DNA of 63,844 nucleotides, the filler included, from Neoconidiobolus thromboides FSU 785 (lineage: Eukaryota > Fungi > Entomophthoromycota), in the NCBI GenBank assembly GCA_025603075.1. It is 5 parts of 5 records of this genome, joined end to end, with 100 filler letters (N's around TTAATTAATTAA, not from the genome) between each part and the next. Parts side by side here need not be neighbours in the genome. Positions count along the whole stretch, not along the records: positions 40,667 to 50,327 come from MU626657.1; 4 more parts are not named here. One strand, 5' to 3'. This document shows positions 40,668 to 50,327 of this stretch, one piece after another. The notes under the pieces are model-generated. The model was given only the letters and a program-made list of their open reading frames with translations. It did no database searches and was not told where the DNA came from. Each line of letters opens with the position of its first letter. Position 1 is the stretch's first letter. The translations under genes were made by a program, and so were the position numbers.

Positions 40668-41786
40668 TTCATCTTTGATAGTCAGAATATGTTTTGACAG
40701 AATTAAAAATACCTCATTTAAATTTGTCCAAAAAGAGAACGAAAGTTCTTTTTGATTAGTAAGTGCATTGAACGGATTCGGATACTTTTGATAAACTTGT
40801 TTCAATACCTTAAAGTTAGGTAACTCGAGTTCAAACTGTTTCCCTAATGGAAACTGCTTAAACAAAGAATGATTTATTGTAGCAAAGATCACTATAAATT
40901 CCCATATTTTATACTTTTGTATTATTAATGTTGCTTCTTCAAACGTTTTATTTTCTAAGTCTGTGTTTAAATTCACTTTATCAATCTCTAATGAATAAGC
41001 CATCCTTAATATTATTGGATAAATATGATTCAACAAGTCCCAATTAAAATCAAAGCATGCAACTTTACTTAGTAACAATAGTGCCTTAAGAGTATTAATA
41101 CTTACATCATCTAAAGCTTGATAGATTAGCTTTGTTGACTCATTATGAGTTTTATTAAAAATGTCTATTAAAGTTGGATCATGATATATATTTCCATATG
41201 AGCTAAAAGTGCTTAAAATAGTATACGATAAAAAATTGGGTTGTCTGCTTTTTAGTATAGCCCTTAACTCTTTTTCTGTAAACTGATTACCTGATCCAAA
41301 TAATAAGCATCGATGTGCATGGATCCCATCCTCTAAAAATTTACCATAATCTACGCTTGTTACCTTATTTCCTACTCCTTCAGCACTTCTTCCTGTTCTG
41401 TTCCTTAAGTTGAATAATTTGTCCGAATTGAGTTTAATATAGTCCTTTAGTACTGAGTCAACTTGCTTTATATACGTATCAAACTGAGAAGCTGAAAAAA
41501 GATTAGTGCAACTGTAACCATCAAAATCATTATTGGAGTTCAACTGCTTACAAGCCCAAACCAAATAGTTTTTTATATACTGAAGTTTCTTATAATAATA
41601 TATTGGTGTTTCATTTGAGCTTGAATTGATTAAAGTTAACTCATAATCTTTTATAAACTGAAATATTGTTTGTACTTGTGACTCCAATCTTAGTATCCTT
41701 TCATTCAGCTGTTTACTTTTTGCTTTTGAACTATATCCTTTCTTACGCTCTCTTTCTTTATTAAAATTATATGGTATTATTTTCAT
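40668..41786 (-). CDS. Fungal transcription-factor (middle homology region) protein, copy A, 3' end beyond contig
   Basis: Basic RERKKG + LNERILRLESQV coiled coil; TLKALLLLS...ILRMAYSLEIDK MHR motif; no Cys6 zinc cluster seen. Confidence 0.7.
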
Positions 41787-42973
41787 TCAAAAAGTAAGAT
41801 AACTCAAATCCTTTTTTATCTAATCTCAAACATTTCTACATCATAAATTTTGAAAATTGTAATGTGGGTGGTAAACATTGTTAGTGACTTATTTTACCAA
41901 TTAGCTTTTGACCCTTTGGGGATCAAATTTCGAAAAAATATTGTTTAAAGAGCGAAATCATTTTACAAATAATCGAATAATATTTTTTTGTAATTACGTT
42001 GTTAAGCTTGATGAAAATAATCGTCCATGGCACTCAAAAGGTTAATAGCATCAATTATCAGTCAGACGTTTTACTATAGAAAAAAAATAAGCCTTTAAAA
42101 ATAGTTGTACAGTATATCATAATTTAAAGATTAAAGACATATTAAAATGATAGGATGAATAAAAGGATATAGTAAAAGCTTATTTACATCCTACTCATAC
42201 TAATTTGATCAAATAAAAAATAATCGAAGCAGTAACAGCATATAGATATCCTTTTTTATTTCAATATTTTGCCAGTAGCTTTTCTTAATTCTACGTTAGG
42301 TAAAAGGACAAAAAATACTGAGAACAATAAATGTATTCTTATGTGCTTTACTACTAATAAACAGTTTTATATAAGGGCAGATTGTTAGCCTCATAAAATA
42401 ACAAAAATTTCATACAGAAATGTACAAAGAGGATTAAAAATAGTTTTAAATATGTAAATTTATAATAATATGTATACTTTATAATAAACTATTTGAAAAC
42501 TTTTAAATTAAGACCTACCTTATTAAATTATAGCTAAAAAGCAAAAGAGGGAATATGATCAGTTGGCAATTTTTAAAATCTTTAAATTTTTTGAATTTCA
42601 GTATTATTGTAAATACAATTACTGCAGTTCTTTTGTGAATTAACTAACTGCCTATTTATAACAAGGAATTATATTAAGTTTCCTAAGTAATTTGATTGCC
42701 TTTATGAAAATTGGATGCATAAATAATAGAGCTATATAAGCTATTACTAAGGCAGTCGCAAAAGAGTTGAGACAGTTGTACAATAACTCCATGGTTCCTT
42801 AACTATATTATCAAGTTGGTAAATACCGGTTATACATTATTTTCTAAAAATCATAACAAACTTAAGACCATTAATTTAAAATTGTCTTAAATCAAATACA
42901 TAATACAATTAAACCAAAATGACTCTAAACAATAAAGGCAACTAATACTTTATAAATGAATTTATTCTAAAAG

Positions 42974-43480
42974 CTAATTTTGCTCCTCTTTAACATTTTG
43001 ATTTAAACGCCAAACTCTTTTACAAAGGTAACCAGAGATAAACAACCAACCCAAATAAGGAGTCATTAGCAGCGCAGCATTTGGAGAAATAGGCAAGAAG
43101 CTGATGGTAGTAAAGCAAGCTAATATCAAGGTAATGAAGATATCAAACAGTGCTAAGAGCCTTGATTGGACTCTAAAAAAGAGAGGAGGGAAATTGATAT
43201 TGAAGAAGAGTTGGGTTAAATATAAACAGATTTGAAATTTTACTGGCACATTATTGATAATTTTTTGGCGCCAAACAAGATAAGAGGCAATACCCTGTAA
43301 TAGATATAAAATCGTCCAGATTGGTCCTATAAGTCGTCTTGGAGGTGCCCAGAAAGGCTTTTTAAGATTGGTATAATATGGATTTGCAAATCTACGTACA
43401 TGAGAGCCAGAAGCATAACCTAATACTTGTGGGAGAGCTATAAAGGCACAGAAACCAAGAATACGGGTGATTAAAGTCAT
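42974..43480 (-). CDS. tspO: TspO/MBR translocator-family protein
   Basis: YTNLKKPFWAPP, GPIWTILY, QLFFN...PLFF, LMTPYLGW. Confidence 0.92.
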   Translation of the reverse strand: MTLITRILGFCAFIALPQVLGYASGSHVRRFANPYYTNLKKPFWAPPRRLIGPIWTILYLLQGIASYLVWRQKIINNVPVKFQICLYLTQLFFNINFPPLFFRVQSRLLALFDIFITLILACFTTISFLPISPNAALLMTPYLGWLFISGYLCKRVWRLNQNVKEEQN

Positions 43481-44433
43481 TGTTTAGTATTAAAATTAAA
43501 AATCAAAGAAAGGGATAAAATTGAAGTATTTATAGTTTGGGATAGATTGGAATGATAAACTATATATTTGTTATGAAATCAGTTGATAACAAATAAAAAT
43601 TAGATTAAACTATTTAGAATGATAAATGACTACATTTAGTAATTTTATTATTGTTGTTGTCGAGATTATTAATACAGTTTATTATTGTTTAATAGCCATA
43701 AAATATTAAATATTAATTTGTTTTCATTTTTTAACACCCAAACCATTAAAATTGCTTTAATCTTAAATTTGAAATGTCAATCTATACCTTATTTGGTCAA
43801 CGATAAACAACTACTTTTTGTAAATTCTACAAATATAATTTTTTAGTAAAAGTAGTGCCATTCAAAATACTTTAAGTCATTAAATAAGTATTAAATTATT
43901 GTTTATTAATAAGACCCTTTGTATTATTCGCCGCCTCTATCAATTAAATTCTAATTGATAGTTACCTTTGATTAAAATAAATAAGAACATTGAACTATTC
44001 AAGTTATGCTAATAAATTTTAATTGAAATTAGATATTACTTAATTTAATTAGTTTATGAATTTTAGCCATTTTTATTATTTTCTATTAACACTACAACTA
44101 TGTTAACCCAATATTCATGCTAAACTACAATTATTAAGTTGTAAATAATATTAAAATCCAAGCATGGGCACTTAAATAAACAGAACATAGTAATATTAAA
44201 GATAACAATGTGTTAAATAACAAGCAGTCAAATAAAATTGATTTTTTTAATTTATATACTTTCGTTTAAAATAGGGCAAAGTAAGGATTAAAACAAATTC
44301 AAACTTTGTAATAAAAAAAATAATCACAGATTTATTTTTATTACAAGAAATTAATTTTGACTATTTAAGTTGACTTAAATAATAATAACAATAAATGTAA
44401 ACTTTAATTTTTGATTTATTACAACAACGATCA

Positions 44434-49004: not shown

Positions 49005-49093
49005 AAGGGCATATTTTTAGGTTTAGAATTTATTAGTAATTCTTCCATTTAAATAGTACTTAAGAGATAAAAAATGAAGCCAAAAAAACACTA
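49005..49093 (+). mobile_element. Degenerate MITE ~115 bp upstream of TF copy B
   Basis: partial consensus, ends aatgaagccaaaaaaacact. Confidence 0.6.
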
Positions 49094-49207
49094 AATCTTA
49101 CCAATTTATAGCAATAAATTATTACTTTTACAAGTGTTCAAAGTTTAAGTATTCTAAAAAGTTTGGAAACAGACAAAAAGTGAAATTTGAGATAGTCACT
49201 TTTTTAA

Positions 49208-50327
49208 ATGAAAATAATACCATATAATTTTAATAAAGAAAGAGAGCGTAAGAAAGGATATAGTTCAAAAGCAAAAAGTAAACAGCTGAATGAAAGGATA
49301 CTAAGATTGGAGTCACAAGTACAAACAATATTTCAGTTTATAAAAGATTATGAGTTAACTTTAATCAATTCAAGCTCAAATGAAACACCAATATATTATT
49401 ATAAGAAACTTCAGTATATAAAAAACTATTTGGTTTGGGCTTGTAAGCAGTTGAACTCCAATAATGATTTTGATGGTTACAGTTGCACTAATCTTTTTTC
49501 AGCTTCTCAGTTTGATACGTATATAAAGCAAGTTGACTCAGTACTAAAGGACTATATTAAACTCAATTCGGACAAATTATTCAACTTAAGGAACAGAACA
49601 GGAAGAAGTGCTGAAGGAGTAGGAAATAAGGTAACAAGCGTAGATTATGGTAAATTTTTAGAGGATGGGATCCATGCACATCGATGCTTATTATTTGGAT
49701 CAGGTAATCAGTTTACAGAAAAAGAGTTAAGGGCTATACTAAAAAGCAGACAACCCAATTTTTTATCGTATACTATTTTAAGCACTTTTAGCTCATATGG
49801 AAATATATATCATGATCCAACTTTAATAGACATTTTTAATAAAACTCATAATGAGTCAACAAAGCTAATCTATCAAGCTTTAGATGATGTAAGTATTAAT
49901 ACTCTTAAGGCACTATTGTTACTAAGTAAAGTTGCATGCTTTGATTTTAATTGGGACTTGTTGAATCATATTTATCCAATAATATTAAGGATGGCTTATT
50001 CATTAGAGATTGATAAAGTGAATTTAAACACAGACTTAGAAAATAAAACGTTTGAAGAAGCAACATTAATAATACAAAAGTATAAAATATGGGAATCTAT
50101 AGTGATCTTTGCTACAACAAATCATTCTTTGTTTAAGCAGTTTCCATTAGGGAAACAGTTTGAACTCGAGTTACCTAACTTTAAGGTATTGAAACAAGTT
50201 TATCAAAAGTATCCGAATCCGTTCAATGCACTTACTAATCAAAAAGAACTTTCGTTCTCTTTTTGGACAAATTTAAATGAGGTATTTTTAATTCTGTCAA
50301 AACATATTCTGACTATCAAAGATGAAT
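49208..50327 (+). CDS. Fungal transcription-factor (MHR) protein, copy B, 3' end beyond contig
   Basis: Translation identical to copy A except WES/WEF and ATT/ATI. Confidence 0.7.

Follow-up and report, generated by a model that had tools for sequence, protein, structure and literature searches.

Near-identical inverted copies of an MHR-like gene flank a 7.4-kb segment in Neoconidiobolus thromboides and may be homogenised by gene conversion

The palindromes of sex chromosomes and the inverted repeat (IR) of plastid genomes are structures in which arm-to-arm gene conversion holds the identity of the two arms above 99.9% as their flanks drift apart, and in which the spacer can exist as inversion isomers; in plastids, this flip-flop is constitutive and takes place in a multicopy genome. 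Here, we describe an inverted gene pair in the early-diverging, insect-associated fungus Neoconidiobolus thromboides FSU 785 (GCA_025603075.1), the two near-identical members of which occupy opposite ends of the contig MU626657.1 and encode a protein with a predicted domain resembling the middle homology region (MHR) of fungal transcriptional regulators. This contig supplies positions 40667-50327 (9,661 nt, hereafter the piece) of the window, which is the whole stretch of 63,844 nt, filler included, that was analysed, and all coordinates given below are those of the window. The sex-chromosome and plastid systems differ from this pair in that they span tens of kb to Mb and involve other genes.

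The closest documented analogue is the flip/flop (FF) region of Saccharomyces cerevisiae chromosome XIV, which has the 'Centroid' gene pairs YNL018C/YNL034W at its borders (Salzberg et al. 2022, PMC9731477). The 4-kb IR of this region comprises whole genes and a tRNA, and its 24-kb spacer has been re-inverted many times in evolution, with both orientations documented across strains (PMC9731477). The inversion is a passive polymorphism, and no event of this kind was seen over some 53,800 mitoses and 950 meioses (PMC9731477). As in the FF region, the IR described here consists of paralogous genes from a fast-evolving, often duplicating and lineage-restricted family, apparently kept near-identical by recurrent homogenisation around a unique multi-gene segment; it differs in that at least 1.12 kb of the 5' part of a single gene is visible, and in a spacer of 7.4 kb as opposed to 24 kb. 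Flip/flop is also the means of mating-type switching in Ogataea polymorpha and Komagataella phaffii, where IRs flank an invertible segment (PMC5720833; PMC6692504), and in O. polymorpha its regulation needs alternative identity genes at the ends together with position-dependent silencing (PMC5720833). The N. thromboides locus resembles these systems in its IR geometry around a segment and, putatively, in homologous recombination between the arms, whereas the switching of the two yeasts involves a MAT gene at either end, silencing by a centromere or telomere, and a pathway that is induced.

The GC content of the AT-rich piece, 27.66%, compares with the 27.5-27.65% reported for assemblies of Conidiobolus coronatus (PMC12387763). 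By base-by-base comparison, its two arms, located at 40667-41787 and 49207-50327, are mutual reverse complements over 1,121 nt with two mismatches. With the right arm read as its reverse complement, these are A versus G at 40876 (paired with 50118) and A versus G at 40897 (paired with 50097). A repeat search yielded a single long inverted repeat with arms that reach both ends of the piece, which starts with ATTCATCTTTGATAGTC and ends with GACTATCAAAGATGAAT; the length of 1,143 nt at 99% given by this search includes an extension of the alignment into a degenerate part beyond the 1,121-nt arm. A chance origin for a 1.1-kb repeat at 99.8% identity is impossible. The near-identical arm parts enclose a spacer of 7,419 nt (41788-49206), and the piece thus has the two long, near-identical inverted repeats around a unique segment that define the geometry of inversion regions. 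Each arm is an ATG-initiated open reading frame (ORF) of 373 real codons that reads outward and is still open at the end of the piece, the ATG lying at 41786 on the minus strand and at 49208 on the plus strand. Both mismatches are non-synonymous (F/S and I/T), and synonymous differences number 0 in 373 codons. A preliminary description of this sequence had proposed an inverted repeat of at least 1.1 kb, stopping at the same base at both ends and made of two outward-facing ORFs that differ by two amino acids, and each of these features is borne out by the comparison. The arms and the stretches that adjoin them are as follows.

40667..41786, minus strand: left arm, copy L, codons 1-373 of the putative MHR-like regulator gene, carrying F and I where the copies differ, the ORF open to the end of the piece
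41787..41866, minus strand: proximal upstream region/5' untranslated region (UTR) of copy L, where the repeat carries on in degenerate form, with 67% identity and indels relative to the copy R stretch
49128..49207, plus strand: proximal upstream region/5'UTR of copy R, the counterpart of the degenerate copy L stretch
49208..50327, plus strand: right arm, copy R, codons 1-373 of the same putative regulator gene, carrying S and T where the copies differ, the ORF open to the end of the piece

What is new at this locus is that near-identity ends at the ATG while the next ~80 nt remain homologous. The near-identity breaks off sharply 1 nt beyond the ATG in both arms, and in the 80 nt that precede each ATG, 58 of 86 alignment columns are identical (67%, with indels), for an alignment score of 22. 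This score was reached by none of 500 shuffles (z about 6) and by none of the 1,824 native 80-nt intergenic windows of the piece (maximum 14, mean -4.3, sd 5.1). The 80-nt blocks lying further upstream returned background scores only (-5 to -1), indicating no homology beyond the first ~80 nt, and the homologous region amounts to about 1.2 kb in total. Divergence therefore steps from 0.18% in the coding arm to about 33% in the adjoining non-coding 80 nt, a step that argues for an older inverted duplication, the coding part of which was recently homogenised by gene conversion. The duplication is apparently not a fresh one, as the ~80 nt preceding the ATGs have kept their homology yet drifted to about 67% identity. 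Purifying selection was considered as the cause of arm identity and rejected, since it cannot give 0 synonymous differences in 373 codons beside a stretch that has diverged to such an extent. Concerted evolution of the inverted pair is the simplest reading of these sequences, which come from a single genome, and homogenisation of the arms, as known for IR-flanked inversion regions, is signalled here by the divergence step in one genome. The suggestion of palindrome-arm gene conversion, one half of what the preliminary description had advanced, gains support from the disparity between 2 differences in 1,121 nt and an identity of 67% in the adjoining ~80 nt.

The locus is probably best understood as a passive, conversion-homogenised inverted gene pair that is prone to inversion and is not a regulated switch. 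The piece would represent ordinary nuclear DNA of an entomophthoralean fungus of the Conidiobolus type, in which a 7.4-kb segment of four unrelated genes lies between inverted paralogues of a lineage-specific, fast-evolving MHR-like gene that has no Zn cluster. The inverted duplication would be the older event, with the upstream ~80 nt having drifted to about 67% identity since, and gene conversion from arm to arm would recently have replaced one coding copy with the sequence of its partner. As arm-to-arm gene conversion entails physical recombination, an inversion polymorphism of the spacer is plausible, and crossover resolution of the same recombination intermediates would be expected to invert the 7.4-kb spacer occasionally. 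Several observations weigh against this account. Conversion tracts are not expected to end exactly at a start codon, and the sharpness of the edge is unexplained, although it may be the point where divergence of the flanks now blocks extension of the heteroduplex. A single draft contig underlies both the presence of two physical copies and the close match between them, and a consensus drawn from reads of both copies can overstate the likeness of the arms. In addition, the two differences are both non-synonymous and only 21 nt apart, and are equally compatible with allelic or read-placement noise.

The two arm differences are both T/C transitions in gene orientation, 21 nt apart, and are located in the outer fifth of the visible arm, the inner 890 nt being identical. 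They may lie where the most recent conversion tract ended, or could reflect allelic noise. The residues concerned also vary among the homologues of the arm protein in N. thromboides with which it was aligned. A 30-nt inverted match of 83% between 44412-44441, at the 3' end of a Nudix gene in the spacer, and 50095-50124, the arm stretch bearing both variant sites, is probably a chance occurrence in AT-rich DNA.

The protein encoded by the arms belongs to a very narrow family, seen in Conidiobolus-type fungi only. A word-index search with the arm protein matched solely its own gene model, and an exhaustive search of 1.84 billion representative proteins returned 6 matches, comprised of the same model and 5 others. 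These five homologues (P0004-P0008) are 466-646 aa in length, share 25-42% identity with the arm protein, and all belong to N. thromboides FSU 785. Three of them are encoded on one 137.6-kb contig, two with consecutive accessions and locus tags, and these two neighbours are just 27% identical to each other, which indicates a family that diverges fast and duplicates locally. The N-termini of the homologues align with that of the arm protein, featuring an M-x-x-KI-x-x-Y motif followed by a basic stretch and then a long helix, and this conservation identifies the ATG as the true start. A metagenome scan with the arm protein gave 120 pattern matches, of which none was a relative, and an exact 30-mer from the contig end had 0 metagenome matches.

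The preliminary description had named the arm genes MHR-type transcription factors, a classification that finds some support at the level of the predicted fold and of a protein language model, but none in Pfam or in the presence of a Zn2Cys6 motif. The arm protein had no Pfam match even at E<=10, PF04082 included, and PF04082 likewise did not match the five homologues at E<=0.1; PF00172 matched neither the arm protein nor any homologue. A six-frame regular-expression scan of the entire piece for the Zn2Cys6 cluster pattern CX2CX6CX5-12CX2CX6-8C returned 0 instances, and with no such pattern in any frame, a hidden upstream Zn2Cys6 exon in the piece is ruled out. The AF2 model built from the six-sequence alignment has a mean pLDDT of 67, with values of about 80-90 for residues 150-310, and the all-helical domain predicted by this model for residues ~142-373 superposes on the corresponding domains of Cep3 and Upc2. 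Neither a Foldseek search of the PDB nor a profile search of PDB sequences produced a useful match. In the ESM Atlas, the arm fragment and P0006 both fall among Fungal_trans/Zn_clus clusters (0.96-0.97, 175-180 shared features). The resemblance to Gal4-type Zn2Cys6 regulators with an MHR (Cep3, Upc2; PF04082 Fungal_trans) extends from the superposition of the predicted helical domain to the basic stretch and long helix that precede it, as they do after the Zn cluster of those regulators, whereas the arm protein differs in having no Zn2Cys6 cluster and no match to PF00172 or PF04082. We conclude that the arm protein likely has an MHR-like domain, as modelled, without a DNA-binding zinc cluster, and that a coiled coil probably precedes this domain. 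The term transcription factor denotes resemblance only, as DNA binding is not supported; members of the family, themselves without a DNA-binding domain, could act as partners or antagonists of Zn-cluster factors.

The homologues also imply ~100-270 further residues, and the contig must therefore be cut inside the arm gene. The public gene models of the arms (P0001 and P0009) are 358 aa in length and end in ...WTNLNE, 15 codons short of the contig end, yet the residues past this point (VFLILSKHILTIKDE) align with conserved hydrophobic positions of the homologues. These models probably end at a splice donor falsely predicted because of the contig edge. That both arms end at the same base follows from their identity, as identical arms break at the same k-mer under any deterministic rule of an assembler, and the shared end base is no extra evidence for biology. 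The contig would have ended where assembly was halted in both arms by one shared feature of their identical sequence, possibly a low-complexity or dispersed repeat, the onset of differences between the copies, or a rule on coverage.

The spacer contains four genes, of which the preliminary description had listed a TspO, a Nudix hydrolase, a SUN glucanase and a tyrosinase. Pfam confirms the TspO, SUN and tyrosinase assignments, and gives weak support, exon by exon, to the Nudix gene.

42974..43480, minus strand: TspO/MBR family gene, 168 aa (PF03073, E 3.4e-37), in tandem upstream of copy L
about 44437..45566, minus strand: DUF4743-Nudix gene, multi-exon with short GT..AG introns, exon 1 at 45566-45288 and exon 2 from 45234
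45880..46731, plus strand: SUN-family beta-glucosidase gene, 283 aa (PF03856, E 2.8e-52), with a signal-peptide-like N-terminus
46778..47920, minus strand: tyrosinase gene, 380 aa (PF00264, E 1.5e-31), divergent from copy R

In the exon-by-exon search, positions 2-84 of the DUF4743 profile fall in exon 1 and positions 86-117 in exon 2, and the weakness of the Nudix assignment is evident from E values of 1.6e-4 for DUF4743 and 0.2 for the NUDIX box in exon 3. Copy R and the tyrosinase gene are divergent and have a 1,287-nt intergenic region in common, while copy L lies 1,187 nt downstream of TspO, and the two copies thus reside in different regulatory contexts. The SUN and tyrosinase genes are also adjacent and convergent at 1667-3928 of L001, a contig from a relative (Logan run ERR10900026, 33% GC), in the same relative orientation as in 45880-47920 and with 53-58% amino-acid identity to their counterparts in the piece. 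Unrelated genes lie on either side of the pair in L001, which has no copy of the arm gene. This synteny suggests that the spacer is ordinary chromosomal DNA and that the arm genes are a lineage-specific addition. As the products of both genes have signal-peptide-like starts, SUN and tyrosinase may constitute a conserved secreted gene pair of cell-wall function and melanisation. Exact look-ups of the tyrosinase and SUN products for other assemblies of the locus found nothing on record, and scans of the piece for tRNAs, Rfam families and tandem repeats were empty or trivial. A linear plasmid with terminal inverted repeats was also considered, and is ruled out by the incomplete ORFs at the ends (373 aa as opposed to 466-646 aa), the lack of polymerase genes in the piece, and the nuclear-type character of its genes, with spliceosomal introns and synteny in L001.

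The most serious challenge to a real inverted pair is an artefact of assembly, in which a single gene copy, or two clearly diverged copies with an over-homogenised consensus, would appear as a collapsed repeat node entered from both sides. The shared end base keeps this explanation a candidate, the more so as both ends stop within an ORF that must continue, given homologues of 466-646 aa, and as the piece is a short stand-alone contig for which no independent sequence of the locus was found. A hairpin or collapsed repeat would use one node twice with one real junction, and what is found instead are 2 mismatches between the arms and two different junctions: a single shared start codon leads into two distinct unique sequences, an outcome beyond one linear copy, and degenerate, inverted homology of 80 nt is present at both junctions, which no assembler creates. 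Homogenisation of the consensus could still exaggerate the identity of the arms, but an artefact as the whole explanation is rather unlikely. More doubtful again is a segmental duplication, inverted and very recent, that had its inner breakpoint beside the ATG and involved no gene conversion. An identity of 99.8% with a knife-sharp inner edge is what such an event would leave, and the family does duplicate locally, as exemplified by the three members on the 137.6-kb N. thromboides contig, two of them adjacent by accession and locus tag. A fresh breakpoint, however, should adjoin unrelated DNA, and the 80 nt beyond this one are homologous at 67% with indels.

The preliminary description had also raised the possibility of a phase switch, with inversion of the spacer swapping the two promoter regions between the 3' ends of the genes. 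In a regulated flip-flop cassette of this kind, induced recombination between the arms would invert the 7.4-kb segment and cause phase variation, the two promoters being exchanged between 3' halves that differ, or between chromatin that is active and chromatin that is silenced. The arrangement of long IRs, near-identical and with unique sequence between them, has the flip/flop geometry, the upstream contexts of copies L and R are quite different, the arms bear apparent evidence of past recombination with each other, and regulated IR inversion does exist in O. polymorpha (PMC5720833). The visible 373 residues of the two copies, however, differ at two variable positions only; the piece contains no centromere, telomere or recombinase, and its spacer no mating-type or other cell-identity genes; and the closest analogue among gene pairs, that on S. 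cerevisiae chromosome XIV, is stable in the laboratory. Neither functional asymmetry nor alternative cell-identity genes at the ends are found in the visible sequence, and we hold a regulated cassette to be improbable. The specific form in which a crossover in the 5' arms exchanges the tyrosinase-linked and TspO-downstream promoters between copies with different 3' halves or chromatin is very improbable. A passive inverted pair, homogenised by conversion and prone to inversion, is the reading that we favour over these alternatives.

Because both the architecture and the mechanism have been documented in yeasts, plastids and sex chromosomes, the locus leaves current understanding unchanged. For users of the draft assembly, it serves as a warning that the contig is cut within a gene at a repeat and that both 358-aa models are truncated. 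Were the promoter swap true, an insect-associated fungus of an early-diverging lineage would have a phase switch acting on an MHR regulator that has no Zn cluster. The locus also draws attention to MHR-like proteins that lack a DNA-binding domain and form a very narrow, fast-evolving family, with 6 matches among 1.84 billion representatives. If real, the inverted pair would provide a case from an early-diverging fungus of two genes whose identity is maintained by gene conversion on either side of a short segment with several genes, and would represent a ready-made site for inversion polymorphism and local suppression of recombination.

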